DNA of 63,387 bases, the filler included, from Reticulomyxa filosa (lineage: Eukaryota > Protista > Foraminifera), in the NCBI GenBank assembly GCA_000512085.1. It is 16 parts of 16 records of this genome, joined end to end, with 100 filler letters (N's around TTAATTAATTAA, not from the genome) between each part and the next. Parts side by side here need not be neighbours in the genome. Positions count along the whole stretch, not along the records: positions 46,149 to 59,490 come from ASPP01037602.1; 15 more parts are not named here. One strand, written 5' to 3'. Shown here piece by piece: positions 1,395 through 59,674 of the stretch (position 1 is its first letter; the number at the start of each line of letters is the position of its first letter). The position numbers and the translations under genes are program-made. The notes beneath the pieces were generated by a model. It had not been told where the DNA came from, did not search any database, and was given only the letters and a program-made list of their open reading frames with translations.

Positions 1395-3683
1395 ATGAAT
1401 CCAAGTGAAAATGCTTCAACTAACTATATCCCTACGGACAACAATGCTTGCGTTGAAACTTTGACTTCATTACCTACTCCACTTTTCCAGAGCGAATGTG
1501 TGGTTCACGGACGTGAAATTCTTATTTGTGGTGGCTATGAAAATCAACAATGTTACTCTTATCATACAGTTCGAAATGAATACAAGTTCATTTGTTCTTA
1601 TCCAACGGAGGTCCTGTTACGTGGACATTGTGTGGTAAAACTCGTGAATAAGACTAAAAATTCGGACGAAGTCACCTTGCTATCTTTTGGTGGATATCCC
1701 AGACATACTTTGATGATGGAATATGTTAGTGTTTGGGACAATGGGGATGAAGCTGGAATAAAAGATACAAAGCATTGCAATAAATGGATAACAGCCAATG
1801 ACAAAAAAAAAAAGCCAGTGCATATCGGTAGAGATAAAGACAATTATGAAGGAGCGCGTGCAGTAATTGGTGGAAGCAATAACCATTTATTGTTTATTAC
1901 TTATCAATTAAACAATATAAGCGTGTTTGATTTGAATTTATTCCAATTTGTCAAACATAAAACTTTACCAATTACAAAGGATTGGCCAAGATGTCCTTTG
2001 TTTATTTCAAAAAGTGAAAATAAAAATGAAATGTTATTGTTTTGTGACAAGAAAAAATTAATAATTAATTACAATGAAAATTGTAACAAACTTCAATTTT
2101 GTGAAATACCTGTTGATGTTCCGATAATTAAAAGATGTGGATCTGTATATGCCAATGATACAGTTCTCTTTTTTGGTGGGATGGGTAATATTGTTGGTTT
2201 CAAAGAAGTTGCTTTATCTATTGTACACAAATATTCAATAAAACAAAGCCAGTGGATGAGTTGTGGACATAGTTTACCTATTCCGTTATATGATTGTACT
2301 ACAGTATTAAGTGATGACAAAAAATTTGTACATATCATTGGGGGTAAGGACGATAGAAAAAATGCTATGACAACGCACATGAAAACAAAGGTAGAATCAT
2401 GGGTAGAGGAAATAGAACACAGGGAAATGAAAAGCGAAAATCAGCCAGAAGAGCAATCAAAAAAAGACACTATAGAGACGTTAGATTTGAAAAAACATTG
2501 GAGTAAGGATTGGATAAATGCAAATGTAGAGGCAGCAAAAACTGTAGAGGGAATGATCCAAAAAAAAGAAGAGGACTTATCGTTGTAACGAACACCGATA
2601 CATTGGAAAACAATGTTAATTTACTTACATTCGAAGATGCAAGCAAATTGGAAAAAAAAAGATTTGGAAAATATTATGTATATGTAATACAAAGAAATTT
2701 GCTAATATGGAATGATGTAACTATTGATGGAAATGTATATGTTATTGATTGTGCAATTCCCTGTCAAGGAAAAGTAGGTATTACAACTCAACTTTTTGTT
2801 ACAGCAGGAGCGACAGTAGATAATAAGATAAAACAATCTATCACTCCAATTCAATGGAATAGCAAAATGCACCATGATATTTTGCTACAACTTCAAGACC
2901 TTGCTAACGAAGAACAACAATGCTTGAGAAAAAAACTTTTTGACAATGCACTTGTTTATGCAAAAAATTCTTTGAGACTTTCGATTGACACTTTCGGATA
3001 TGATCATCCCTTTGTCGCGAATGCGTATGAAAGTATGGGTGATATCTGTTACAATAAAAAAAATTACTGTGATTCAATTGGATATTATAAAAAAGCATTA
3101 CAAATAAGGCTAGATTTTTTTGGAAACAATCACAGTGAAGTTGCTTTTTCGTACTTTATTTTAGGCAAAAATTGCTATGAAAAAAAGATTTACTCAAGCA
3201 ATTGATTATTTCCAGAAAGAGTTAAAAATTCGATTGGATATTTTCAGCAACTTCAAAATCGAACTTGCGAATACATACAATTACTTAGGCAGTTCTCATC
3301 ATCATAAAGGCAACTATGTTGAAGCAATTGAATACTATAAAAAAGCATTGCAAATTAGATTGGATATTTTCGGTGTTGACCACAACCTTGTTGCTGATTT
3401 GTACAACAATTTGGGACGCACTTACTATGTGAAGAAGCAATATACCGATGCAATTAAATGCAATGAAACTGCACTGAAAACAAGAAAATTAGTATTCAGA
3501 AATGCAAACAAATGTGTTGGTGATTCTTGTTACTATTTGGGTGTCATATTTGAAGAAATGGGAGAAAAGAAAACTGCATGCAAATATTTTGAAGAATCAT
3601 GGAAGATATTCAATACAGTTTTCGGAGAATGGAATAAAATAACATTGAAAGCAAAAAAAAACGTAAAAAAATTGCTTGAATGA
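1395..3683 (+). CDS. Kelch-repeat + TPR-repeat protein, split over three ORFs by two apparent 1-nt frameshifts (~2570 and ~3185)
   Basis: Kelch motifs EILICGG, CYSYH, GHCVVKL, GARAVIGG, VLFFGG, VHIIGG in 1395-2588; TPR motifs (AIEYYKKALQIRLDIFG, LYNNLG) in 2510-3205 and 3177-3683; ORF overlaps coincide with A-runs. Confidence 0.8.
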
Positions 3684-4258
3684 ATTCTGTGAAAATTGAT
3701 ATTCTTTGTTCTTGGATTTCTATCAAGAAAAAGTAATTTTTGCAATAAAGCACATGATCGCAGTTTTTTTAAATTTATTTTTAAATGTTTTGATTAATAT
3801 TTCTATTTGAAAGCACATTAAAGACGATACAGCAGAATGCAGAAAAAGTTGACACTAATATAGATGCTTGACTTTCTTTCGCATATCTATAAACCATTAG
3901 TTTAAATATAGTTTGTTTTTTATTCCATATTTACTAATTCTTCAAAAATATCCGTTCTTTTTATCTATGCAAAGTTCAACTAAAAAAAAATGAACGTCAA
4001 GGCAGTGTATTTATATATTTACCCAGCTTTTTTATGGTTACATAAAACAGTTTAGCTACGTTTTTAAAAGGATTTGTTTGTTGTTGCTGGATTCCAGTTG
4101 CTATGTCAAAAAACATAATATAACGATGACACGTGAAAAGCCACTCGTCTAAAAAGATCGTCGTTACTCCAACAGAGAAAAAAGAACAATTGTGATTTGA
4201 AAAAGAGCGATTCCTCTTTTTTGAATGAGTTGTTTGCCTATTTTTTTATGTCACTCAT

Positions 4259-5324
4259 TTATCCCCACAAACGAATCATTCCGTCATTACAACACGATAC
4301 AATAGTTTTACCATCAAATGAAACATCTATATCTCTGACGTGATTTTTGTGTCCCTCTAATTTCTGAATTTCTTTCCCTGTGTTGACATTCCATATTCGA
4401 ATTGTTTGATCACGTGAAGCTGATACAACAGATTGACCATCTGGTAAATATTTCACACTATTTATCCAATTTGAGTGCCCTTCAATTTTTTTCATTTCTT
4501 TGCTTGATTTCAAATCCCATATTCGAATAGTTTTATCACTTGAACATGAAACAAGAAAGCGACAATCAGGAGAAAACTGTGATTGCAATACTTGCTTTAA
4601 ATGCCCTTTTAATTTGTTTACTTTTTTCCCTGATTGTGCATCCCATATTTCGATTGTTGCATCAATTAATGAAGATACAATAAATCGACCATCTGGTGAA
4701 AATTGTGCATGAAGTACACAAGCTACATGTTCACCCATAACTTTGATAGTTTTGCCAGATTCTAAATCCCACACTCGAATCGTTCCATCCATGGAGCCAG
4801 ATAAAATGGTATTTCCATTTGGTGAAAATCTTGCACTTACTACAACATCTGTATGTCCTTCCAATGTTCTTACTTCTTTTCCAGAATTCACATTCCAAAG
4901 TCGGATTGTTTCGTCTTTTGAACACGATAAAATGGTATTGTTGTCGGACGAAAAATCTATATCGTTCACCCAATCTGAATGTCCTTTCAATACTTGAATA
5001 CTTTGCAGCTTTGCATCAAATATTTCAATTGTATTGCTTCCAACAGATGCAGCGATGTTAGTACCATCTTTTGAAAATTTCACACGTTTTATAGCTTGAG
5101 AATGCTTATAAAATACTGACAATTGTTTATAGTATGTCTTCTATTTATATTTTAAAACAAAAAAGCATTTGCAAAAAAAAACAAACAATAGCTCTTATTT
5201 TCATATATAGAGACTACTAAACAACATACTGTACAATGATTTTGTTGAAGTCATCAATCCATCCAATTCGAATAGATAAGGATCGAGTCCAATACCTTAA
5301 AATAAAGATAATATCCTTTTCATC
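4259..5324 (-). CDS. WD40-repeat protein (about 7 blades) with upstream spliced exon DEKDIIFILRYWTRSLSIRIGWIDDFNKIIVQY; 5' end unresolved
   Basis: GH...IRxWD repeats in 4259-5140; TAG acceptor at 5143-5141; CAG acceptor at 5327-5325. Confidence 0.88.
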
Positions 5325-6171
5325 CTGGTCGTTTTTTTATATATAAAAGAACAACTGTTATTGCATTGTGAAAATAAAAAATAACAAAATCAATTGTTAC
5401 ACTAAGTGCGTTTGCCGCCAGCGTTGTACTTCCAGTAATTGAGGCCTTGTTTCCCACTGTCGCAAAATGTATTTAAAAAAAAAGCAGCCACAAAATATGA
5501 TAGCAATATTAAAAAGGAAAAATAAACTTTCATTCAACTTTTCAATGTCTGATTACAAATTTGACCCCTTTTATTTTTGCTTTAAAAACTGTCAGTTCAG
5601 TTTGACAAGATTTCTGGGAAACGACAAACAAGAAGTTAGATTTGACGCGTTTGCCACCGTCTATTTTGATGTCAGTATTAAAATAAGATAATTGATTTAA
5701 ATTTTAAATAGTTTAAGAATTCGTCGATCAAAAACATGTGAAGCAAAAATTGTGCCAAAAAAAAAAATTTAATATTATACCAAATTTTTGACATAAAAAC
5801 TTTCCAAGTCAAAACTGAAAAAATGGAGTGCAAAAGAAAACAGAGACTGAGTATATCAATCATAGTAGCAAAGAGGGTTACAATAGCAGAAAAAACTGCG
5901 TGGTTATGAAACTTTATTTAAAAAATATTATCCATTAATTTGACTTTTTCAAATAATATGGAAAAATGAACACTACGTATAAAGTAGGATTCGATATTAA
6001 CAACCTACCAAAGATAGCCTTCTATAACTCCATTTAAATCGTTAACCCAGCCAAGAGGCTGGCTTGCACACGTTTTCAACCAATAATTGACTATCGCCTG
6101 GATCTCATGTTCAGTCTTTTTTTTTTTGAAGAGACTACACGTATAAAAAAAAAAAAAGAAATGGCTCGGAG

Positions 6172-7420: not shown

Positions 7421-9112
7421 ATGGATGAGATATGGTACGACGTTAAAGAAACCAAACAAAAGAGCAATATTTACCTAAGCAATAAAATCGACAAGCAGTG
7501 TAAGAATCGTCATCGTGGCGATCGTTTTAAAAACGGCTCTGCGCCTTCTCAACGACGCGCATACAGACAAAAAAAAAGAAGAGAGATGAACAAAAGGCGA
7601 AAGAGTGTTCGACAGCAGATAAACTACAGATGTGAATTTAAAGTAATTGATAGTTGGAAAATTCCACGAAAGGCATGTAATGATATCCAAAGAGATAAAC
7701 CGTTTGTCAAAGATAAAAAAATCGGCAGCAAGAAAGCAAGCAGAAGGCGAACGAGACCACCCTTCGAAAATAACCCATGCAGTGCAAATGGTTATCGCCA
7801 TCATATTAGTTATCCTCCCACTCGTCACAAATAGTTGAGTTAGTGCATTCAAACAGAGAAGGAAGAAAAGAGGTGGGGTTCATGACTACAAAGACTAGAA
7901 ACATTTTTTAAAATTTCAAATATCGAATTAATTGTTTGTTTATGTAATGCAGTGGACGCTTTCAAGACACCAACAATGATCAGAGTAAAGAGAAAAAAGT
8001 GCAAGCTTGTGCGACAAATAACAGAGTCCAAAACGTTAAACTAGTGGCTAGGTTTGAGCTGGAGGGCCTCAGTATTCAAGACATTGCCAAGCTTGCAAAC
8101 AAAAAGATCCATCAGCTGACAGCCCAAGATTTCACTCAGGTCATGTCCAAAGTCACCGAATTCGGTGTTGAACGAATTGTTCTCAGTTTGAAAATGAAAC
8201 CCAGCGATGAGGATGTTTTAGAAGGTAAAAAACGGAGTAACTCTATGTTTTGGGTCTTGCATGTTTTTTCGAGGGATTTTTTTTTGCAAAGAGATAAGAA
8301 GGGGGGGATGGAAAATTAATAATTTATAACTGCAAATATTATTTTTTATATTAAAAAAAATAACAACGAAAAAAAGAATTTCGAAGTTTTGTGGTAATTC
8401 CCAAGGTAACATTATGTCATTTAGGAATTAATCATCAATACGATCACATTTTGCTATCAGTCCATTCCAAAATGCATTGGTATTATATGGCACATCGCGC
8501 TTTGGAAGCAGCATCCAATATTCTTATTCCGCAAATGTATGCATACAATAATCCTCCCATTTGGTCTTTTGATATTGAGCGGCATTCGTTCATGTTACAT
8601 GAATGTTTTTCTGAGCATTTTCCACTGGACGTTGTTGTTGTTACGTTTTTATTTATGTTATTGTGTTGTATACGTATTTTGCCATTATGTACCTTTCAAA
8701 CAAAAAAAATATACATATGAAGACTATTTCAGCTTATTTGGGAAGTTATTATTTAGCGTGGATCAACGTGAAAAGCTGTGACATCATTGTTCCAAATGAA
8801 CAATGGCTCGGGATATTATATTCAAGTTGGAATGACGGAAATTCTAATATTGTAAATTTCCACAACCTTTCTTCGATGTGTCGATATGAATTAAATACTG
8901 CCACACCTCTCCACCGACTCTGCAGTATTCAAGCGCTTCCAAAGGGATACCAATTATGGACCTATGAAGATTTACAAGAATTACAATGGTGGTATAGAAA
9001 ACTCCACAAACAACCTACAGCACTTGTCGAAACGGAGTATGAATCACAAACTGTTGAAGATTACATTGACAATATTTATCGCTTCGTTGTACAAGATATT
9101 TTCGGAACGTAG
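7421..9112 (+). CDS. Probable multi-exon hypothetical protein; exon structure unresolved
   Basis: Successive same-strand coding-like ORFs (7421-7834, 7999-8319, 8391-8720, 8663-9112) separated by AT-rich intron-like stretches; no domain recognised. Confidence 0.4.
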
Positions 9113-45189: not shown

Positions 45190-47109
45190 GTTGTTGATGT
45201 TTAGGAAGTTTTTTTTTTTTTTTTAGTTGAAAAAGGAGCTGTGGCCTGACCCCCTTTTTTGACTTTTCTTCATTGATATTTTTTATTTGTTTTAAACATA
45301 ATAATTTAAGCAACGAAAATTGAAATGCGTGAAAGATTGAATTATTGAATTATTGTATCGAAAAATTTAAATGAAAAAGTAAATACTAAATCAAAGGCTG
45401 AGATTGTGACAGTCTTTGAATAATGAAAATATCGGAAAACATATGGATGTTGTATTTTTTTTATTTTAAAAAAAAATTAGTTATTAAGAAACTTGAAATG
45501 ATTTATACTTGTGTGTAACTGAACTGTACAAAATCATTATCTTTTTTTTTTTAGTGAAATTTAAAAAAAACAGAATTCTATGATCATTTCTTTGTATTAT
45601 GAAATGATTGGAGTTTTTAATGATGTAAAACTTTTTGTAAAGTTATGCAACTTGTAAATCCCTGTGTAAATTATCTATTGTTTATTTTATTTTAATTCAT
45701 GCAAATGTATCTTTGAAAAATATCAAATCCAGGTTAAAATAGATTTCATCTTGATCAAAACAATTATGCATAATATATATATATAATCAAATGCATTTCT
45801 TACATATTTTGACTTGTACTTCCATTAATTGGAGCGATTTCAAAAAAAATATTGTTTTTTTTTTATGAATTAAATAAAATTAGATTAAATTTGTTTCTTT
45901 CAACAAAGTTATACTCCTGCATTCCATTCTTTTGGAGGAATATACAAAAATAATTTTAAAACTTTAAAATAGTATTTGGAAAAATATCAATTCTATTTTA
46001 TTGTAGAATATGGATCTGGTGAAGAGCTTAAAACATTTGAACCGCAATNNNNNNNNNNNNNNNNNNNNNNNNNNNNNNNNNNNNNNNNNNNNTTAATTAA
46101 TTAANNNNNNNNNNNNNNNNNNNNNNNNNNNNNNNNNNNNNNNNNNNNAATATATGTTTTAGGCGTTCAGTTTTCTTTGCAAACTACTGTATAATCAACT
46201 TTAAAACGTTCCAAATGTAAGCTGCCCAACAATGAGCCAGTGCATATGCATACACTATGTCCAATAACAAAGCAATATCAACAAGCTTTATCAATCGATC
46301 ATTTACTTTATCGATAATTTGCCAATGTATAATAACAACTGGAAAAATTGTTTGCTGTGTCTTCTTTCACATGGACTAGAAACTCATGGTGGAAAATAGC
46401 AGTAAAAGGGCGTTTTTGACATCATAAATAGCATTTGGTTCAAAGTCAACATATTTATCTTGTTTGTTATAATTAAACGGAAAAACGAAATGCCAACGGA
46501 ATACTTAGCTGCAAGGTTCGATGGGCAAATTGGCCAATGCCTGTTTCTTCAAAGAAGACTTTAAAAGAGTCATCTTTTCATTAGCTATCTTTATTGTTAC
46601 TTACTTGCTTGTTCACAGATGGCGTTACCTAGTCGTATACTGGCTTGGCCGACCTCAATTGTGATAACTTTTATATTTTTTTTTAAAATTTACCAAACAA
46701 CAAAAAATGACACAAGAACTTGAACAGAAAAACAAAAGTTCTATGTTCAAATCAAAACAACACTTGAGCCTTCCCCGTTGGTACTTTACAACAAAACTGT
46801 GTTCCAAAAAAAAGTTTGTTCAACAAATAAAAACTTCAAAAAAAATATCCAAAAAATATGAACATATCCTTAAAATTTGGACTAAAGTTTTTCAAGTGGG
46901 GACCAAATTTGGAGTGCTAAAGCGTTTTGCGCTGTATGCACCCTGCCACATCGAACCAGTTAAATATCTTTTTTTTTCTCAGTAAAAAAATCTTCTAACA
47001 TGGGCCAAATGAACAATTTTTCATGACCTACATTTTTATTAAGGATGAAATATATTTTTTAGATTCACCAGGGCGTGTAGATATAATTCAAAAAAATTTT
47101 GAAATTCCA

Positions 47110-47336
47110 CTTGTAGGGCAATGCCCTATAAATATCTGAATGTTGAAGGAACCTGGAAGTCCCCAGTGGGCTAAAACTCCTCAACCAACTTCACTTACTC
47201 TTTTGCTTTGTTGTCTTCTTTGGTTGCGTTATTCATCTTTCTTTTATTTAATTTACTTTTGTTTTATCGAACATTGGTTTCTTGAGCAAAACCATTTTCG
47301 TATTACATTTAGTACAACTCTCCAGCTGACGTCCCA
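47110..47336 (+). repeat. Dispersed repeat, homologous to 38235-38452 (-)
   Basis: Same shared blocks as the partner copy. Confidence 0.7.
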
Positions 47337-47799
47337 CACACTTATGGAAAATTACGTTTTTTAGTGTTCGTAGGGTTCTCTTTACTGAAATCTTTTTTTT
47401 TGCTGTCAATTATATATTCATTGAGAAGTAGGACAGTCACAAAATCGTATGCTTTCTAATCCGATGAATCACGTGATAGACTTTGGAGTAGACATGTGTT
47501 ACAACTTATAAAACGACTTTTGACGTGTACAACAGGTCTTAAGCTTAACGAACACCGAAACGCTGTTTAACTACAGCTTCGGCAATTATATGTGTATTTG
47601 CTACATATGACAACAACATTCTGTCGTTTTCATTATAAGTCTGATTATCCCAATTTCAACACATACTCGGAATGTATCTACCAAAAAAAAAGAAAATTTT
47701 TTTGAATGATGTATAGATCATTTTTTTTTGGGGGAAAAAAAGATGGTATTTGTAGGTCGACCATTAATTTATACAAGAATATTTATACTTAATTTTTTT

Positions 47800-48631
47800 T
47801 TTTACAAACAAACAAAAAAAAGTGAACCAAAGTAAAACATACAAAGGCGTATTAAGCCAATGAACCAAACCAATAAACGAACAAGCAGACACTGGCTGAT
47901 AAGAAAATAAAGAGTGAAGTTACTCAAGGTTTGTCTTCCAGTAATAGGGCGCTCCCTTGCGTCTCTTTTGAAAACTTTTGAAAAGTATACGTGATGTAAA
48001 TTTTGGCACATCGTGATGGCAAAATTATGAGCAATACAATACCGACAATGATGCAAGCGGTAGTATCTTTGTAGAGTTCTGTAATCATCAACACGCGAAC
48101 TATCAAGAACAGCACTAGCGATATGCAACTAGACAACGCGCATAATCGGATCATGTTTTTTGGTGTTGATTGGATGGCATATGACCTCATCCAAGCAAGA
48201 ATACATGCGTCCAATATGAACCTATTCATATGTTTTTCATTATCAGTCTTTTTTGGGTTTTTTTTTCTCTCTTCGTTCCCTTTTGGTCCTGTCTTTGCAA
48301 AGAACATTTCTTTTTTTTAATGTAACTTCGTCAACACAAAAAACGTGGGGAAATACAACAAATTAATACAAAATGCAAACAAAATTTACCATGCTGCAGG
48401 GATAATCTGGAGCGGGGTGGTGTTTGTTTTGTCCATATAATACTCCACAAACTGCACAATACCTGCAATAAGGTCTGTGATAATAAACCGAATAAAAATT
48501 TTCCGAAACACATCTTCTGAATATTTGTGCATATTAGACGCAAAAATAAGAATACGGCACATTATTTTTCGTGATTTTTGATGATGGCTTTGAACTGATT
48601 CTTTTTTACGTAGTTTTTTCTTGAAGTACAA
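47800..48631 (-). CDS. Multi-pass membrane protein, multi-exon, family not recognised
   Basis: Hydrophobic helices in ORFs 48386-48631 and 47924-48307. Confidence 0.45.
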
Positions 48632-48914
48632 ACAAAACAGTTCGCTTGTGCGTTTATTTGTGTGATAAACACAGCTTTTTATAATTACATCAAAAGCGGA
48701 ACATTCAAGTCATGGTATTGCAAAATACCTAAAATGCTATCTTAAACTTTGCGATGCTTTTAATACAAAAAACCAATAAAGTGCAGAGTTTTTTGAGATA
48801 GCAATATATCGTGGCTGTTTTGGCTTGTCAAACTCTTCTGTAGTTTTCTGCAACAAGCAAGCAATTGCAAAAAAAAAAATTAATTTACTGAAAGCACGTG
48901 TGTGCATATTAATA

Positions 48915-51214
48915 TCAAAGCGCTGTCCAGACTCGAATTATATTTCCTGAACAGAACGACACAATAGCATCGCCATCTGGCGAAACGTCTGTCCCACATA
49001 TATAGTACTGGTGTTCCCCTAATTTTTGTACTTCTACTCCTAATCTGACATCCCACAGGCTAATCCCTTTATTATACAAGAAAATAGTTTGTCCATCCGG
49101 AAAAAATTGCAAATTTGACAGGTTTACAGCTATATTCAACGTCTTAATCTGCGTCATTGACATTACGTCCCAAATTTGTACGCTGTCGTAGGACCAAAAC
49201 GCAATATAGCGGCCGTCTGGAGAAAGCTTTGAATATGAATCGCATTTAAATTCCTGTTTGACATCCGATGTCACGTTCCAAATTTCAATTCGACTGTAAT
49301 TAAATAACAATATGATATGTTGGCTGTCTGGTGAAAAACGTGCACGCGATATTTCTTCAGTCACGACAAAATGTCTTAACAGTAGTCCGGACTTTACGTC
49401 CCACAATCGAATTGGTTCATCGCGTGAAGAAGACAAAATAGTTTTTCCATCAGGTGAAAACTGCACATTACTTACACTTTTTTGGTGTCCTTTTAATTGT
49501 CTAATTTCAGTGTTTGAGTTTACATCCCAAATTTGGATAGTATTGCCTGAGGCAACTGCAATAAGTTTGCCATCAGGCGAAAAGTTAAAATCTTGAATAT
49601 GTTGTAAGTTTTCTTTCCACACTTGTGGACCCTTTCCTAGCTGCCATTCCCATATCAGAACAGTATCATTTATTATAATAATTTTGCTACCATCTGGTGA
49701 AAATTTTACATGACGAACTTTGGAAGAACAAACCGTTGATGGTTTAAAATACTTCATCTATTTTTTTTTGATTTGAATATAGTGCATTAAAAAACTAGCA
49801 TTAAAAAAAAACAAAATAAAACCATTTTTACCAAAATATATCTCGCAATGATATTGTCAAATTCATCAATCCATCCAATTTTAATGGATAACGTACGAAT
49901 CCAATGATTAACTATCATTTCGGTTTCTTTTTTCATCTTATTGTATTTGTTTGTTTGTTTTTTTGTTTTTTTTTTGAGTATTTTATTTCATCACTCTTTT
50001 TTTTTTTTTTTTTTCCAACGAATTAAATGAAAAAGAATGAAAGAAAAGAGATAGAGCCCTAACATTGATCTTTTGGAAATCAAAATCTTCTTTTGGCATG
50101 TCGACATCTTTTCGAATCTCCTCAATGTCATTTTTTTCTTTTTCTTCAAAGGCCCACCGTCTTTCTGTTTCTGTCGAATCTTCCATCCATTCCTTTACTT
50201 TCGTTCTCAGATGCAATTTTATTGAAAGCAAGCCAGAGTATCCTCCGACAATGTGCACATATGTGTTGTCCTCGTTCGGCACCCCAAAACAATCCGTCAT
50301 GGAAATAGAGGCAGTTTGTTCAAACTGCCTCCATTTATTTTCTGTTATTGAGTACTTGTGCACAAGTTTGGAAGAATGGAGTCGGGAATCATCTCCGCCA
50401 AAAAAGAGGATCACATTATTTATAGCCACGTAAGCATACGAACAAAACGGCCTGATTGTGCTACATACACGAATAGAATGGAATTGAAAGGTATTATTGC
50501 TTTCATCATAAGATATGAATAGCCCAGTTTTGTTGCAAAACAACAGCATTTGTTGATTCGAATTCTCATTTCCTGCATCAATTTCATTTGCAAATTTTGT
50601 CACAAAACAGTGATATCTATCTCCTCATTAATTGGTAATATCTCATGTTTTACATATTCCAATGTTGTTAAATCAAACACATCAATATTCTTTGGATAAT
50701 AAGTGATAAACAACAAATTCTTCTTTCTGCCTCCAATCACTGCACGCGCTCCAAAAAAATCATCTCCTTTTCTTCCAATTGTCACGGGTTTTTTATCACT
50801 ACCTATCAAAGGGGTCCATTCATTCCATTCACTTTCTTGTTTGATTTCTTTCCTGTTCTTATTTTCATCCCAAACGCTCATGTATTTCATCACCAATGTA
50901 TGTCTTATAATTTCTCTAGATCCTCCAAAAGATAATAAAGTAATGGCATTTGGATTGTTGTCATCCACCATCTTTACCACACAGTGACCACGCAATACAG
51001 TGTCATCTGGATAATAACAAATACGCTTGTACTCATCTTTATGTGTGTCGTACGAATAGCAATTTACATTCGTACGTCCTCCACAAATTAGAATTTCGTG
51101 CTTGTATTGCACACACTGGGCAAGGCAAAAATTGCACGGTAGAGAAACCAAGGTTTCAAAGGAGATTTTCGTGGATTTGTCTGCTGTTTCAACTTTCATG
51201 CCATTTGAATTCAT
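48915..51214 (-). CDS. Kelch-repeat + HWIR linker + WD40-repeat fusion protein; exons ~51214-50064 (1-nt frameshift ~50618), 49936-49832, 49757-48915
   Basis: Phase-0 GT-AG introns 50063-49937 and 49831-49758 join ..FQKIN|MKKETEMIVNHWIRTLSIKIGWIDEFDNIIARYIL|MKYFKP..; YHCFV is restored by one added base. Confidence 0.82.
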
Positions 51215-51737
51215 CTCAAATAAAAAAACAAAACACAAATTTAATTTACTAGTTATAATTTGAATTTTTTTTTTTTAAAAGCTGTTTCTTACAACAACCT
51301 TTTTTCAATTAGTGTATGCATCTTGCAGCACATATCTTTTTAAACATCATTTACGTCAAAAAGAACTAAAAAGATGTTGTAAGGCACACACACACAAAAA
51401 AATAGAGCAAAATGAATTTGTTCATATCATTTCAACTCGTACTATTTTGGAAGAGCAAACTGAGCCAAAAAAAAATAGGACATAATATTAGTATAGCCAC
51501 ATTAAGAAGCAATTTCAGTGAAAAACTGGTTCGTTTTGGTCCTCGCGAAGGCACATGCACGAACTGAATTTTCTATCTTCTCCAAATATTGTCAAACACT
51601 CATGTTAGAAATAAGAGACGATATGAACAGTTGGCTTGAGGTTTGCTCTATTTTTGTCTATTCATCAATCCTGTAAAACACACATTTGCAACTTGTGTTG
51701 GCGAGAAAAAAAAAAGAAAAAGACAAACAGTAAGACT

Positions 51738-54700
51738 ATGGTCAGTGACATTGATTACGCAGAAATGATAAATTCAATGAAATATTATGGCAAAGCAATT
51801 GACAAAACTATCAGCAGATTGTCGCATATATCGTCAGTATCTTTTCAAAGTAAAGATTATTGTAGCAATGACGCTGTTGCACGCATATGCTTTCCTATTA
51901 ACAGTGCAAAATGCTGTGGAGGGATGCAAGACAATATTGACAATGTCAGAAATGAAGAAAATCGGAACTATTCAAAAGAAATAAAAATACTAATGCGACT
52001 TTTTGGAGAGCTGATAAATAAAGAAGACCTGCAACAAAAGATGGAACAATTTGAGGGAAAGATCGAATTGGTGATTAAGGATCTTGTCCAACAATCGTTT
52101 GAAAAGCAGGTACAAATAACTATATCGTCATTTTATTTTATTTCCTCTGTCATGCACCCACCTCCTTTTTTTTTTTTTTTCTGCCCTATTCAAAATTAAA
52201 AAAAAAAAGAGTAAGTTGGAATCAGAAAGCAAAATCAACGAATTGAAAAATATGGAAGAGGTAAATTACTTAAATTTTTTTTTTTTTTTTTTGCAAGTAA
52301 TGAATGATTCTTGATGTCGTTTAATCTTTGGTTTTGTTTTGTTTTGTTTTGTTTTTTTTAAAAAAAAAAACAAAACAAAACCAGAGACAACAAGAAGGAA
52401 ATATGATAAATGATATTGATATGAATGGACATATGAATCACAATAGCAAAAGTGAAAATGTACAAAAAGAAATAGAGAAAACGGAAATTGGAGAAATAAA
52501 ACCGGGAATTAATCTGCAAGGATATTGTGTGAATGAAATCTGTTTGGCATCAAAGGCAAAATTACCGGTATGGATTAATATTGGATTTGATGATATTGCA
52601 TTTGCTCCCAATAATTCATCTTTTAGCTGTCCTGATTGCAAAAAATCGACAGTCAGTTTTATTGCAAAAGCAATGTTTTACAATTCTGAATATTCGATTT
52701 GTGCAAGTGGTGATTCAATGCTTGTAAAGGACAACAATTATCAATGCTCATATACAATCAAATCTGGACTGTCATATGAATTAAAAGCCAACAAAATTAG
52801 ACAACATGCAGCAAATATCGAAGACTTACGAGAAAGAAGTGAAAATGCAATGAACAGTACTGAAATTCAAAATCTGATCACCGAATTACAAAAATATGAA
52901 ATCACTGTGGTAAAGCCACCCGATTTAAAAGGAAATGAAAGGCTATTGGAAAAGATTCAATCCGATTATGGCGGTGATTTTAATCAGGCATTTGATATTG
53001 GAAGATTTACAATTTTATGTGATAATCCTACCAAATTACAAACTGCTGTTGCAGTCATGAAAAAAGCAGAACAATTTCACTTAATTGTATCTGAAGATAA
53101 AGATTTCTTTAACAAACAGTCAAGGACGCATCATCGGTTCCATAATATTAAATTGTATGTTCCAAAACATGATGTATATATTGAAATGCAAGCAACATTG
53201 AAGAATTTTACAACGTTGGAAGGATATACTGTCATTGAAAATCCAAAGTTGAGTCATTTATTTTATGAACATATTCGAGCATGGAAGCCTAATAATCAAT
53301 CAGAAGAGGAATTGAAACAAGCAAGTGATGAAACATTGACAAAGATTAATGATATAATCTGTGAATGGATTGATGCAAAAGAAGTCAAAAAAATTGCAAA
53401 TCGTTACAAACCACATTCAGAAATTCGAATATTAAAGCCTCCAAAATTAAATGGAGTGACTGAAGAGGATATTCATATCAAAAGAAATGTCTCATTAAAA
53501 TTAACCAAATTTGTGTATGATCAACTTTGCAAATTCGATCCATTGAAAATGAAAGGACAAGCTATTTATGTAGTTTTATTTGAGTATTTCAAGAAACACA
53601 TTATGGGTGAAATGAATCCAGCAAGCTGTGCTGATGTTGTATCACTATTGAAAAAATCAAGAAAACAAGAATTAGAAGATGATACAACAATATTACAAGC
53701 TCTCGAAACATATGTGCCATTGCAAGCAAATGATTATGCACACACAGACAATGACGTCAATGAAAAAAATGATTCATATGATTGTCGTCAGCACATAATC
53801 GATTTCCTAGTGGAACAAAAAGAAGAACAAAAAAGTGAACAGAATAAACAAGTTAGAGTAATGGTTTTGCAAGGAAAGTCAGGATCCGGAAAAAGTCTAT
53901 TTTGTCGTCATTTAGAAGAAGCATTGTGGGAATCATATATAAATGACCCTTCTGCACCTATTCCAGTTTGCATATCATTACCAAAGTGTTACAATGAATT
54001 GAATGAAACACAAATCATTTCTCAAGCACTACAAATGAAAAATATTAATAAAGAGATAATTGATATTATTCGTGAAAATATTTCATTTGTATTTATTTTA
54101 GATGGGTTTGATGAAATATTTGACAAATATTATAAAAATAATAGCAATAATAATGAAAGATATTTTTATGATCGTTTCAATTTAAATGAATGGAATGCAA
54201 AAATTTGTCAGCTGTCGAAGTCATGTGTTAAACGATGAAGATATTCAACATGTTTTAATTGGTTCAAATAATTCAATCACATCAATGGTACATTTGTGGC
54301 CTTTTTCAAAGGAACAAATGAAAGGATACATTGATAAATTTGTGAAGATAAACAAAAAGAATAAAATGAATGATAATTCAGATTGGACAACACAGCAATA
54401 TGAAGAAACATTGAAAAATTATCCAAATTTGAATAAAATGATGGAAGAGCCATTTTTACTTCGAATGATATTAACTGTATTGCCATCATTAATGAAACAA
54501 CATCCAATTGGAACTAAAATATCAAAAGCACAAGTTTATGAAGCATTCAATGAACAATGGATTGATATTCACGTTAAAAACGTTTCCAATAAATTAGCAG
54601 AATTAAGGATTCAAATTTATCCTAAAAAAATTAAATCAGCTTTTCAAAAGTATTGTCGAAATCTAGGATTTGAAATGTTCATTCAAGAGAATCAAGTTGC

Positions 54701-57664
54701 AACAGAAATTTCTGGCGATATAGAATATGAAAATAATGAAAGCACAGTTGTAAATAATAACGAGACTGATAGTGTAGTTGTAACAACAAAAGCCAAATGG
54801 AGGAAATACTTTCGTGGTAGCGTTTCAAAATATATGTCAAGAAGAATTGACGATAACAAATATCAAGACGCAGATGAAAACGTGGAAATAAAAACAAATA
54901 CGACTGTAAAAATAAAAGATATTTGGGAAAAGTACTTCAATGGCGACAGTATTGCTAAATATGTATTACGAAGAATTGGTGATAATAAATATCAATTTTT
55001 ACACAAATCATGTCAAGAATATTATGCAGCACAAAAAATCATATCTGATATCATTTCATGGAAACCTAATGCTATTGCTGTTGACAATCAACAATTTCAA
55101 CAGCAATTTGAAATACATACCCAAAAGTTATCTATAAATTGTAAATTATTAAATGAAGAATTAGGTATTATTCAATTTATCGCAGAAAGAATTCATGACA
55201 GCAATCCCATGTATGTAAATTTAAAATCAAGATTGTTCCGAATTATTGAAGTATCGAAAACAAATGAAAATGTCTGCATTGCTGCAGCAAATGCTGCTAC
55301 GATTCTTAATTCAGCAAATGTAAATATGCATTATCAAAATTGGAGTAATATCAAAATTCCGCATGCAATTTTAGATCGTGCATTTCTTGAAGGAAGTAAT
55401 TTTACCAATGCAAATTTAGATTATGTTAGCTTTTATCAAACTTTTTTAAATAAGGTTAATTTTACAAATGCATCAATGAATGGAATTTATTTTGGAGAAT
55501 ACGCATATTTAAAAGGACACTCAAAGAGAATAAACGGAATTGCATTTTCACCAGATGGCTCCAAACTTGTATCGTATTCAAATGACAAAACTATTCGGAT
55601 GTGGGACATATCATCAGGAAAACAGCTTCATTTATTGGAAGGGCATCCAAATTTTATTAATGTAGCACAATTTTCACCTGATGGCTCTAAACTTGTATCA
55701 TGCTCGTTGGATGGCACGATTCGGCTGTGGGACGTATTATCAGGCCAAACGATTCAAATATGGAAAGAGCATTTGGATAAAGTAAGCGCAGTGCAATTTT
55801 CATTGGACTGTTCTAAGCTTGTATCATCTTCCTGGGATAAGACCATTCGAATATGGGATACATCATCGGGAAAACAACTTCACTCATTCAAAGGCCATTC
55901 AAAAGGTGTAAATGCAGCACAATTTTCACCAGATGGCTCCAAAATTATATCATGTTCACTTGATAGAACTATTCGGATATGGGATATATTATCAGGAAAC
56001 CAACTTCACATTTTACGCGGACATTTAAATGAAGTAATCGATGTGCAATTTTTATCAAACGAATCGAAAATTATATCCTATTCAAGCGACAACACTATTC
56101 GAATATGGGATGCATTACATAAGAAAATGCAAATATTGGGAGGACACACAGATGCTATTAATGGAATTCGATTATCATCAGATGGGTTAAAAATGCTGTC
56201 ATATTCAAAAGAGAATACAATTCGAATATGGGATTTATTGTCTAGAAAACAAGTTCAATTATTGGAAGGACATTCCAATAGTGTAGAAGCAGCGCAATTT
56301 TCACCAGATAGTTCTAGAATTGTATCTGGTTCTTTTGATAGAACAATTCGAATATGGGATGTATCATCCGGAAAGCAGCTCCAGGTAATAGAAGGACATG
56401 CAGGTGCTGTGCGTGGAGTAGAATTTTTTCCAAACGACCATAAAATTTTGTCATATTCTGACGATGGAACAATTCGCATATGGGATGTAATTACAGAAAG
56501 AAAAATTCAGTTAACGGAAGGACATCTAGCTACTGTAATAAGCGTACAATTTTCACCCGATGGTTCCAAAATTGTATCATGCTCACAAGATAAAACAATT
56601 CGATTATGGGATACATGGTCAGGGAGGCAACTCCAAGTTTTAGAAGGTCATTTAAATGGTGTACATGGAGTACTATTTTCCCCAGATGCCTCCAAACTTG
56701 TATCATATTCCAACGATAAAACAATTCGAGTATGGGATGCATCGTCTTGTAAACAGCTTCAAGTATTAGAAGGACATTCAAATTATATCAATGGTGTTGA
56801 ATTTTCGCATGATGGCTCTAAAATTGTTTCTTGTTCTAGTGACCATACCATCAGATTATGGTGTATGTCATCAGGAAAGCTACTCCAGTTATTGGAAGGA
56901 CATTCAGACTTTGTAAAAGGTGCAAAATTTTCATCAGACAGTCTAAAGAATTGTATCACGATCATACGACAAAACCATTCGTATATGGGATGTAGCATCT
57001 GGAAAGCAGCTTCAGATATTACATGGGCATTCAGCTAACATAAATGGAGCACAGTTTTCACCAGATGATTCCAAAATTGTGTCGTGTTCAGAAGATAAAA
57101 CTATTCGAATATGGGACTCGTTATCAGGGAAACAACTCCAAGTATTAGAAGGACATTCGGACTACGTAAGGTCTGTACAATTTTCTCCAGACAGCTCTAA
57201 AATTGTGTCATGTTCTTATGATAAAACTATTCGAATATGGGACCGCATTGTCCGGAGAACAACTTAATATATTAGAGGGGCATTCAGATCACGTATGGAA
57301 AAGCTCAATTTTCATCCGACTCTTCGAAAGTCATATCATATTCACTGGACAAAACTATCCGAGTTTGGAGTGTATCTTCCGGACATCAAATCCAAATACT
57401 GGAAGGACACACAGGTGATATACTCGGAATACATTTATCGCCCGATGGCTCAAAAATGTATCATGTTCAGGAGATAGAACAATTCGATTATGGGGAATGA
57501 TAATACAAATAATGGATGTAACACAGGCTAGTTTGATCAAATGTATTTGGCAAGCAGGTATTCAAAATAATGGCTTATCAATGAAAGATAGCATTTGGAA
57601 AGATACAAATGGTTTGATATATCAGCAAATATCTCTTATAAAACAACGTGGAGGAAGATTTTAA
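51738..57664 (+). CDS. NLR-like STAND protein: helical N-terminus, Cys-rich domain, RelA/SpoT-like nucleotidyltransferase, NACHT NTPase, pentapeptide repeats, ~16 WD40 repeats; exons 51738-52109, 52210-52260, 52385-57664 with about 6 apparent indels
   Basis: Walker A GKSGSGKS, Walker B FILDGFDE, sensor VSCR, EPFLL, WHD FLHKSCQEYYAA; AAANAATIL + pentapeptides; C-terminal LIKQRGG; upstream K.NER..EK..DY.GD...DIGRFTI...EMQ. Confidence 0.85.
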
Positions 57665-57959
57665 TATCTTTTTTTTTTAAGAGGACATTGTGATACAATG
57701 ATGTTGTTAATAACCAAACCATTTTTTTTTTTAACTTTTTTTTTATTTGATAACAATTGAATCTTTTGTGACTGCAAATAATTCAATGTACAAAATTTTT
57801 TGAAGGAAAAAATGTTTATGATTAGATATTTTTGTAATTCTGTATTTCATAAAATGTGTATAATATTTATTCAATTCTTTTAAATCTCTTTTCCAGAATT
57901 CACATTTCATTACCTTTTGTTTTATCATAAAAATAGGAAAATTTAGCACGTAGAAAATA

Positions 57960-58125
57960 TCTACTATTTCAATTCTATTCCTGGGTTTTGCATCCTATGA
58001 TTAAATGGTAGCATTATTTAGGCTCAACAGTAGTTCCATCCAGTGAAAACTCTGCAATATTAATCCAAGTAGAATATTCATTGGAAATTGGATTTGTCTT
58101 CCCAATATTATATTCCATATTCAAA
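57960..58125 (-). pseudogene. Small WD40 relic
   Basis: EYSTWINIAEFSLDGTTV is readable at ~58030-58080; surrounding frame is broken. Confidence 0.45.
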
Positions 58126-58819
58126 ATGAAAAATGTACAACTCCAATTCGTTTTCGTTTTCTGACTTAAACTTAAAAACGCAAATGGTCTTGAATGTAAG
58201 TGACCTGTTTCTGAAATATTTGAAGCAACTTACAGCTGTGGTGTCGTCATCTCTTTTTTATTTTGACGATGAAACTTTTTTTTGTTGTCGAACTTTATCA
58301 TTTTATACGTCTCAATTTTATCCTTTTTTTAAGTGCTTTGATTCCCCCATCAGTCAAATAATTTATTTTAAAGGAAAGCACAAAAATAAACACAGCAATA
58401 GAAAAGGTGAAAAATACATAGATAAGAAGTTTTGTTCCCTTCAACAGCCTTTTTCTTTCAATATCTCTTCTCTCTCAACAAAATTTTACTTTTTGAAAAT
58501 AAATCTTCAAAGATTCCATGTGTTGTGTAAAATTTGTTTTATTTCAATTTTCTTGAGTCAAACAAAGTTTTCAAAGTAATAAGATGTCACTGAATCTAAA
58601 CATTTAAATATAATACAAACTGTCAAATATATGGACTCATTGCTTATTTTTCGCAATGTCCAAACAGGATTATTTTTTAAAAGCGCATAATTAATGTTTG
58701 ACCACTTCACAATCTTTCGAAAATAAACATGTGCACAAACTTTTTCAAACACGTATTTGTACATTTTTTAAAAACACAAAAAAACGCTCGTAGCAAAAAA
58801 AAAAGGGGGAAAGGTTAAT

Positions 58820-59340
58820 ATGAACGATCATTATACTATGAAACCATATACTCGACGAGGTAATCCAAAAACATTATGTAGTTTCATCTTTTTTTTTTAG
58901 TAGTAGTTTTTCCTGTTTTTTTTTTTTTGGAAGTGTGAATAAAACCAAAAAAAAAAAACTAACAAGGAGTTGCGGGGTTCATGTCCAGAGGGATTATGTA
59001 CAACAGTACGAATATAGTAATAAGCCTAGTGAACCTGCCAACATATATGTACATATTGATAAACTTGTATGAAAAGGAAAGAGTGATATTGTATAACTTG
59101 AGTTTGGTGCAACTACTATTAGCACAATTGGTGTATTGCACGGCCTATGTACATCGATATTGTGGAGGACAGAAACCATTGAAAAAAGTGGTGTACTTTA
59201 TAGCCCTACTTCCAGTGGCTTGGACAGTGCCATTTCTGTTTTACTATAAAGACAGGGAATGGATGGAAATCGTCCCATCAGCTCGTGAGGGCGTACATCC
59301 CCATCATCGGTCTCCATATTTTGTCAGGCGGAAAGTGACC
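58820..59340 (+). CDS. Partial membrane protein, family not recognised
   Basis: Hydrophobic segments in ORF 58981-59448; small upstream exon ending at a GGTAAT donor (~58860). Confidence 0.45.
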
Positions 59341-59674
59341 AAGTTTTTGTTTTTTTTTTTGCTTTCCTTGCTCATAAATCTCTTTTTTTTTTTAAAAAAA
59401 AAAAAAAAATGTATATGTACATACATATATGTATATGTACACATATAAATGTAATAAATATACAATAAATACCAAAAAAAAAAAAAAAAANNNNNNNNNN
59501 NNNNNNNNNNNNNNNNNNNNNNNNNNNNNNNNNNTTAATTAATTAANNNNNNNNNNNNNNNNNNNNNNNNNNNNNNNNNNNNNNNNNNNNCAGTTTAAAA
59601 CTAGAAATTTTTTTTTTAATAAAAAAAAAAAAAAGGGGGGAGATCTAACTTGAATTATTTTTTTTTTTTTAAAG

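Follow-up and report, generated by a model that had tools for sequence, protein, structure and literature searches.

NLR-like proteins that carry enzymatic death effectors occur in animals, plants, fungi, and bacteria. Among the fungal NLRs, the RelA_SpoT-NACHT-WD40 domain combination has been listed, e.g., from Gaeumannomyces graminis (Dyrka et al. 2014, PMC4986451), and RelA_SpoT by now counts among the canonical N-terminal domains of these proteins, although it is rare (Sordariales survey, PMC12258605). In bacteria, RelA/SpoT-homolog (RSH) enzymes include Tas1/Apk1 of Pseudomonas aeruginosa (PDB entry 6ox6), a type VI secreted (p)ppApp synthetase toxin, as well as CapRel SJ46 and the toxSAS enzymes FaRel and FaRel2 (7ztb, 9erv), in which a nonself cue frees an effector that is otherwise inhibited in cis or by a partner (PMC11782079). 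Here, we describe an NLR-like gene of the foraminiferan Reticulomyxa filosa that encodes a Tas1-like RSH domain upstream of a NACHT NTPase. The gene was analyzed as part of a window, i.e., the whole examined stretch of DNA, of 63,387 nucleotides, which joins 16 parts of 16 records of the genome assembly GCA_000512085.1. Window positions 46149 to 59490 come from the record ASPP01037602.1, and the gene occupies positions 51738 to 57664 on the plus strand, as do all of its features described below.

The encoded protein consists of a coiled-coil N-terminus, a four-cysteine (Cys4) beta-sandwich, the RelA/SpoT-fold domain, NACHT, pentapeptide repeats, and 16 WD40 repeats, in that order. This is the tripartite STAND/NLR layout, with an N-terminal effector, a central NTPase, and C-terminal repeats. 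We have high confidence in the identity of these domains and in their arrangement. Our favored reading, to which we assign a probability of about 0.6, is that the gene belongs to an NLR-like family with a Tas1-like RSH effector, a predicted pyrophosphokinase that would be gated by the NACHT domain.

The domain immediately upstream of NACHT has, in its structural model, the RSH synthetase fold, of the Tas1/Apk1-like type. It is encoded at positions 52811 to 53368 and includes the peptide PDLKGNERLL...FYEHIRAW (positions 52919 to 53284), where an earlier examination of the DNA (hereafter, the sequence-only reading) had placed a RelA/SpoT-like peptide at 52900 to 53290. An AlphaFold model of the region 52775 to 53437 has a mean pLDDT of 72, with most of the core above 80. 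When this model was used as a Foldseek query, all of the top 50 matches were RSH synthetases, with Tas1 in first place (5e-7). In VIA-align comparisons, Tas1 was again the top match, with a Z score of 12.9 (root mean square deviation of 2.8 Å over 168 residues, 21% identity), followed by SAS1, SAS2, RelP, and an exported alarmone synthetase with Z scores of 10 to 11; CapRel scored 10.3, the long Rel, RelA, and SpoT enzymes about 8, and unrelated nucleotidyltransferases 7.5 or less. A sequence search against PDB returned Tas1 as its only match, whose E value improved from 0.063 with a single query sequence to 0.0016 when a profile of 26 family members was used; a second stretch of this match covers the H..YE..R motif. 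By sequence and by structure, Tas1 is the closest relative of the effector within the RSH superfamily.

A profile of the effector family matched 125 proteins among 1.84 billion representative sequences, the distant ones being for the most part from ENA or JGI metagenomes. In an hhalign comparison, the R. filosa family profile was linked to the distant family with a probability of 99.8% (E value of 2e-28), and 29 of 70 distant relatives match the Pfam RelA_SpoT domain (Pfam ID PF04607) themselves, the best of them with an E value of 3.6e-10. Like members of the Tas1/Apk1 family, relatives of the R. filosa domain stand at the ends of polymorphic toxins: they are found in bacterial polymorphic toxin-type proteins with eCIS_core, Phage_Mu_F, Ntox3, ART-PolyVal, or calpain-like protease domains, whereas other relatives occur in proteins with TPR repeats or with Ank and NACHT. 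These contexts assign the effector to the conflict-system branch of the RSH superfamily rather than to its stringent-response branch. An unrelated environmental protein, P0104 (positions 2745 to 6257 of L003, an ENA metagenome contig), combines ankyrin repeats, a Tas1-like RSH domain, and NACHT, which indicates that the pairing of a Tas1-like effector with NACHT is not confined to R. filosa and fungi. A search seeded with P0104 matched only P0104 itself.

The sequence motifs of the effector, numbered within the segment 52775 to 53437, are K52, R56, E59-K60, D64-Y65-x-G-D68, D74-x-G-R77, K109-D110-x-F112, H120-R121, E137-x-Q139, and H161..Y164-E165..R168. The corresponding LK..R..EK..DY.GD....D.GR.TI, KD.F, R121, E.Q, and H..YE..R elements are invariant or nearly invariant columns of the distant family, and Tas1 shares both LK..R..EK..DY.GD....D..R.TI and H..YE..R. 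Retained among them, if the roles are as in the relatives, are the ATP-phosphate-binding Lys and Arg residues (K52, R56, and K60), the Mg-binding D74 with R77, and the catalytic E137-x-Q139. Across an alignment of the complete domains of 74 paralogs, mean identity is 0.956 in the motif columns, compared with 0.813 for all columns: K52 and D74 are conserved in 100% of the sequences, R77, R121, and E137 in 99%, and Q139, H161, and Y164 in 97%, with the whole set of K52, R56, K60, D74, R77, E137, and Q139 falling between 93 and 100%. The D, R, E, and Q residues singled out by the sequence-only reading are therefore kept across the family.

The effector is also the most constrained part of the protein that was measured, being under very strong purifying selection. 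In Nei-Gojobori comparisons of the window copy with three paralogous loci (dS of 0.6 to 1.3), the ratio of nonsynonymous to synonymous substitution rates (dN/dS) is 0.04 to 0.10 in the RSH-like domain, 0.13 to 0.19 in the four-cysteine domain, and 0.14 to 0.27 in the linker plus the N-terminus of NACHT. Finding the lowest value in the effector argues for an active enzyme over a scaffold. A catalytically dead RSH-like scaffold, in a family devoted to housekeeping signaling unrelated to conflict, would fit the replacement of Tyr by His in the acceptor motif (see below) and the fixed architecture without effector swapping. However, conservation of at least 93 to 100% in the residues for ATP-phosphate binding, Mg binding, and catalysis, a dN/dS below that of the NACHT N-terminus, and the toxin modules among the nearest relatives all speak against it, and more than 70 diverging copies, many of them broken, are unlike a housekeeping gene. 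We regard such a dead scaffold as very improbable.

The paralogous family is large, and its size of at least 74 genes, encoding proteins of about 1,850 residues, is a lower bound. A search with the region of the claimed domain retrieved 54 proteins, 53 of which are named as R. filosa, with 44 to 92% identity and none identical to the window copy; these matches bear out the rhizarian host. A search with the NACHT region gave 80 matches, mostly from R. filosa as well. All 74 complete RSH-like domains are accompanied by the four-cysteine domain, 59 by a Walker A motif, and 30 are in proteins of at least 1,400 residues. Nearly all full-length members (about 40 gene models of 1.3 to 2.0 thousand residues) carry the Cys4 module followed by the RSH-like module. 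Precomputed annotations assign PF04607 to three of the paralogs (P0001, P0015, and P0024), alongside automatic NACHT annotations. Outside R. filosa, both modules are found in one environmental relative (P0048, from an ENA metagenome contig) with 44 to 50% identity. The intact paralog L001 (ASPP01018909.1) consists of a short exon, a 135-nucleotide intron, and a single open reading frame (ORF) of 1,744 codons, so that the one continuous coding sequence for effector, NTPase, and repeats that is broken in the window copy is continuous there.

Several other members depart from this arrangement. In P0001 (RFI_08856), the Cys4 plus RelA/SpoT-like module is doubled in tandem before NACHT (residues 26 to 391 and 390 to 976), which reflects a true internal duplication or else an artifact of the assembly. 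A paralog at positions 6001 to 11128 of L004 (ASPP01024156.1) is annotated as two genes, one for the Cys4 plus RSH-like part (477 residues) and one for the NACHT-WD40 part (1,177 residues), and its frame changes twice, first at a long run of A directly upstream of Walker A and again near 8309 to 8432. Such split annotation means that the gene models of the assembly understate the number of full-length family members. In L005 (positions 1490 to 4262 of ASPP01001993.1), a WD40 model of 322 residues comes almost immediately after the Cys4 plus RSH-like part (484 residues), with no NACHT; this is a truncated or rearranged copy.

The NACHT NTPase core is encoded at positions 53855 to 54320. Its match to the Pfam domain (PF05729) scores 36.9 bits, above the cutoff of 26.7. 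Walker A (GKSGSGKS, 53873 to 53896) fits the GxxxxGK[ST] pattern and Walker B (FVFILDGFDE, 54086 to 54115) fits hhhhDGhDE, whereas the CRSH and WPF motifs lie past the first of the frame changes discussed below. The description of this NACHT as having intact motifs thus holds for both Walker motifs and for the Pfam score, with the qualification that the reading frame changes inside the domain. Pentapeptide repeats (PF00805; 55317 to 55496; E value of 4.1e-7, 29.9 bits against a cutoff of 20.2) stand between the NACHT module and the WD40 array, as had been proposed. The WD40 array itself (55515 to 57490) has a 126-nucleotide period and consists of very similar repeats, sufficient for two propellers. 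It is recognized by Pfam with an E value of 1.5e-118 (11 stretches within the long ORF, and additional pieces), and Tandem Repeats Finder reports a period of 126, 10.5 copies, and 65% matches; counting of the motifs gives 16 units, in agreement with the earlier estimate of about 16. All of these domain analyses were carried out on the separate frame segments and not on a protein joined across the frame changes.

Upstream of the effector, positions 52484 to 52801 encode an all-beta domain with a C-x4-C motif at 52526 to 52543 and a C-P-x-C motif at 52628 to 52639. The four cysteines (C25, C30, C59, and C62) are invariant in the paralog alignment, and the domain is present in 74 of the 74 paralogs that have a complete RelA/SpoT-like domain. 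Its AlphaFold model is all beta with a pLDDT of 86. Neither Pfam, nor a Foldseek search of PDB, nor an exhaustive VIA-align comparison (best Z score of 5.8, within noise) assigned it to a known fold family. In the ESM Atlas, its look-alikes (score of 0.94; TM scores of 0.61 to 0.64) are limited to unnamed proteins from rotifers and sponges, some of them fused to ubiquitin. This beta-sandwich appears to be a previously undescribed eukaryotic domain.

The gene is spliced, as the sequence-only reading had it, with a single spliceosomal intron. Exon 1 (51738 to 52109; 124 codons, phase 0) begins at the first ATG downstream of a divergent intergenic region and ends at a GT. The C-terminal two-thirds of its product are helical or coiled-coil-like, and its residues 52 to 124 match the N-terminal parts of the annotated paralogs P0005, P0008, P0009, P0016, and others with E values down to 1e-21; Pfam assigns no family to this exon. 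The intron (52110 to 52384; 275 nucleotides) has a GT donor, a polypyrimidine tract, and an AG acceptor at 52383 to 52384 that brings exon 2 into the frame of the long ORF. Exon 2 (52385 to 57664) is a coding exon of 5.3 kb in five frame segments with a stop codon at 57662 to 57664. The intron is backed by the homology of exon 1 and by the identical exon-intron-long exon layout of L001. A small extra exon at about 52211 to 52261 was considered and rejected, both for the stop in that frame and for the fact that exon 1 is already in phase with exon 2 when joined to it at 52385. An uninterrupted ORF at positions 52328 to 54238 holds the RelA/SpoT-like peptide together with Walker A and Walker B of NACHT, so that the effector and the P-loop cannot sit on different transcripts, which upholds the claim that the effector lies directly N-terminal to NACHT on one transcript.

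The G+C content of the gene (0.32) is the same as in the rest of the piece 46149 to 59490, where Rfam and ARAGORN found no RNA genes. Contamination or a bacterial origin of the gene was rejected on the grounds of this composition, the intron, the eukaryotic neighbors, and the many R. filosa paralogs. The neighbors lie on the minus strand. Two abutting ORFs (50600 to 51238 and 49983 to 50603), divergently transcribed from the NLR-like gene, make up a Kelch-repeat protein at 49983 to 51238 (Kelch_1 E value of 2e-5 in the second ORF); their junction at 50600 to 50603 resembles another frame change or a very short intron. Next to them, an ORF of 280 residues at 48915 to 49757 encodes divergent WD40 repeats (E value of 1.6e-22) with about 33 to 37% identity to the WD40 arrays of the NLR-like family. 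This ORF may represent either a WD40 gene of its own or the end of the preceding Kelch gene.

A working model for the protein can be drawn from established properties of STAND/NLR proteins and of Tas1, FaRel, and CapRel. The WD40 propellers would keep the protein off until a ligand is bound; NACHT would then exchange its nucleotide and oligomerize; and oligomerization would activate or unmask the RSH domain, which would move pyrophosphate from ATP to the 3' hydroxyl of an acceptor. As Tas1 is the closest relative, the most likely acceptor would be an adenine nucleotide, giving (p)ppApp and depleting ATP, with the tRNA 3' end a less likely choice. The affected part of the syncytium would be expected to undergo local metabolic arrest or to die. 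We name (p)ppApp as the product tentatively, since the changed acceptor motif leaves other acceptors open, as do the close structural fits to (p)ppGpp synthetases and the fit to CapRel.

Those same features bear on the idea that the RSH-like domain spares the host cell and instead produces (p)ppGpp, or a nucleotide related to it, against bacteria that serve as prey, symbionts, or pathogens, or else pyrophosphorylates the tRNA 3' end and thereby halts translation in the manner of CapRel and FaRel2. The model aligns with the (p)ppGpp-making SAS1, SAS2, and RelP and with the tRNA pyrophosphokinase CapRel at the Z scores given above, and the acceptor-site motif is altered. Manipulation of bacterial ppGpp signaling was proposed by Dyrka et al. 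for the fungal RelA_SpoT domain (PMC4986451), and an exported Tas1-like enzyme yields both (p)ppApp and (p)ppGpp (PMC12691689). However, Tas1 is the best and only sequence match in PDB and the top structural match; the protein shows no signal peptide or export context, its RSH domain being internal to a STAND protein of cytosolic type; and no examined feature points to tRNA binding. We consider it unlikely that the domain acts in either of these ways. The bacterial systems themselves differ from the R. filosa protein in context. CapRel and the toxSAS enzymes share with it an RSH-fold effector (structural matches with Z scores of 9.8 to 10.3), but they are autoinhibited by a small C-terminal domain or an antitoxin rather than by a NACHT-WD40 module, and in sequence they are less similar to the R. 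filosa domain than Tas1 is. Unlike Tas1/Apk1, the R. filosa domain forms part of a STAND NTPase, with neither a secretion delivery domain nor a cognate immunity protein, and its neighbors are the Kelch and WD40 genes.

The fungal RelA_SpoT NLRs are closer in overall design. They share with the R. filosa protein the RelA/SpoT-type domain, NACHT, highly similar WD40 repeats, and a eukaryotic, cytosolic setting in a syncytial organism; this likeness is one of architecture as described. In fungi, the effector is rare (less than 1% of the annotated N-termini and about 17 in Sordariales) and is one among many that are shuffled (PMC4986451, PMC12258605), whereas in R. filosa it is a fixed N-terminal module in nearly every full-length member, with at least 74 complete domains. 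The R. filosa proteins also have the four-cysteine beta-sandwich before the effector and pentapeptide repeats before WD40, and they come from a different lineage, the Rhizaria. The NACHT-pentapeptide-WD40 chassis occurs as well in proteins from Mortierellomycotina, a gammaproteobacterial metagenome-assembled genome, and metagenomes, with 19 to 33% identity over the NACHT region, but none of these carries Cys4 or RSH-like modules of the R. filosa type.

We see even odds that the family serves in a nonself-triggered defense or in allorecognition. The trigger could be a pathogen, prey, or a conspecific, and the role, like the reaction product, is a prediction. R. filosa is a syncytial, network-forming organism, and one could envisage allorecognition between its individuals, with the family controlling fusion of the reticulopodial network in the way of the fungal het/NWD NLRs and having no part in pathogen defense. 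The RelA_SpoT-NACHT-WD40 architecture matches fungal NLR repertoires, the source of het genes, and the WD40 repeats are highly similar, as in the fungal HNWD genes; moreover, fungal NLRs have been reported only from filamentous, fusing species (PMC4986451). Nothing, however, sets such a role apart from pathogen sensing, and allorecognition proper seems to us rather improbable. Broader still is the proposal that foraminifera have a large NLR-type repertoire with a single, fixed Tas1-like pyrophosphokinase output, in which synthesis of (p)ppApp from cytosolic ATP, or tRNA pyrophosphorylation, set off by ligand-induced oligomerization of NACHT, would locally shut down the syncytium; we view it as doubtful.

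Several observations weigh against the favored reading of a NACHT-gated Tas1-like pyrophosphokinase. The Pfam RelA_SpoT match of the window copy (E value of 0.0019, 18.9 bits) falls below the gathering cutoff of 27, so that the RSH assignment relies on fold and profile evidence, and searches with PADLOC and NCBIfam gave no relevant family. In the acceptor region, where the relatives (Tas1/Apk1 included) have G-Y-R-D, the R. filosa family has H-H-R-F, in which H120 replaces the Tyr and only R121 is kept; similarly, the E-x-Q-x-H-L motif of the relatives reads E-M-Q-A-T-L. In the RelSeq and SAS structures, the Tyr of G-Y-(R/K)-x contacts the acceptor nucleotide. With these motifs altered, neither the identity of the acceptor nor even catalytic competence is assured. 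The view of this domain as a RelA/SpoT synthetase, put forward in the sequence-only reading, accordingly stands for its fold, by Foldseek, VIA-align, and hhalign, and for the residues that are kept, and is weakened by the subthreshold Pfam score and the HHRF motif. No effector swapping was seen among the full-length R. filosa members, in contrast to the fungal NLR repertoires, and the expression, ligand, oligomerization, and phenotype of the family are predicted throughout. Finally, the window copy contains five frame changes, one inside NACHT and four in the last five WD40 repeats, which the sequence-only reading missed.

The first frame change, at 54201 to 54206 (frame 2 to 0), lies between Walker B and the CRSH sensor motif of NACHT (NEWNAK/VSCRSH). 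All paralog alignments switch frame there, and the paralogs read through the CRSH motif. The second, at 56943 to 56950 (frame 0 to 1), is in WD40 repeat 12, and it is followed by changes at 57243 to 57246 (frame 1 to 2), 57291 to 57297 (frame 2 to 0), and 57452 to 57458 (frame 0 to 2), the last of which precedes the final WD40 repeat and a tail of about 55 residues; the paralog P0068 aligns to 57452 to 57661 in frame 2. In another paralog, P0056 (ETO36350.1), the annotated model skips, at about residue 600, the IVTCRSHVL sensor segment that follows NEWNAK in all other paralogs; gene prediction may have introduced a splice across a defect located where the window copy has its first frame change.

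These changes raise the possibility that the window copy is a recent pseudogene, that no full-length protein is made from this locus, and that only the intact paralogs matter. Five frame changes in 5.3 kb contrast with none in the 5.2 kb of L001 from the same assembly, and the first of them is not a plain homopolymer miscount. Other copies are broken too (L004 has two frame changes, and L005 has no NACHT), and birth-and-death turnover is usual in NLR families. The closest protein retrieved is 84% identical overall, which leaves the window copy without a matching annotated protein among those retrieved. On the other hand, some 1,880 codons contain no in-frame stops except those made by the shifts, and dN/dS against the paralogs is as low as in intact copies (0.04 for the RSH domain), so that any inactivation would be very recent. 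Three of the five changes are at A4 to A5 runs, and one in L004 is at a long A run, a pattern such as homopolymer sequencing errors produce. We see no reason to lean either way between a pseudogene and an assembly error, and the chances that the window copy is functional are, in turn, evenly balanced.

The literature that was searched contained no paper naming both Reticulomyxa filosa and NACHT, and the papers that name R. filosa and WD40 treat other topics. The earlier claim of novelty has to be narrowed insofar as the architecture is known in fungi, where RelA/SpoT effectors on some NLRs had been correctly noted (PMC4986451, PMC12258605), and as some of the paralogs have already been annotated automatically. 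Thus, the architecture is not new, and the R. filosa family is set apart by its occurrence in Rhizaria, the copy number, the fixity of the effector, the Cys4 domain, and the pentapeptide linker.

The significance of these findings is limited by the prior knowledge of the architecture, by the inferred nature of the function, and by the possibly broken state of the window copy. Nevertheless, we know of no innate immune or allorecognition system described in Rhizaria, and, to our knowledge, the eukaryotic counterparts of the (p)ppApp and toxSAS toxins, including the RelA_SpoT domains of fungal NLRs that have been cataloged since 2014, have never been assayed. A family of more than 70 members with a single, strongly constrained effector of the toxin-type RelA/SpoT fold is a concrete candidate for such a system in Rhizaria and connects the NLRs of eukaryotes with the (p)ppApp and toxSAS toxins of bacteria. 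Its intact paralogs provide usable material for expression, product analysis, and structure determination. Such work would tell whether eukaryotes use the loss of ATP to (p)ppApp as an immune output in the way that TIR domains use NAD depletion. If the broader proposal of a large foraminiferal repertoire with a fixed Tas1-like output is true, Rhizaria would gain their first described innate immune system, and a (p)ppApp-type toxin would be known for the first time in a eukaryote as an effector of immunity or allorecognition turned against its own cell.

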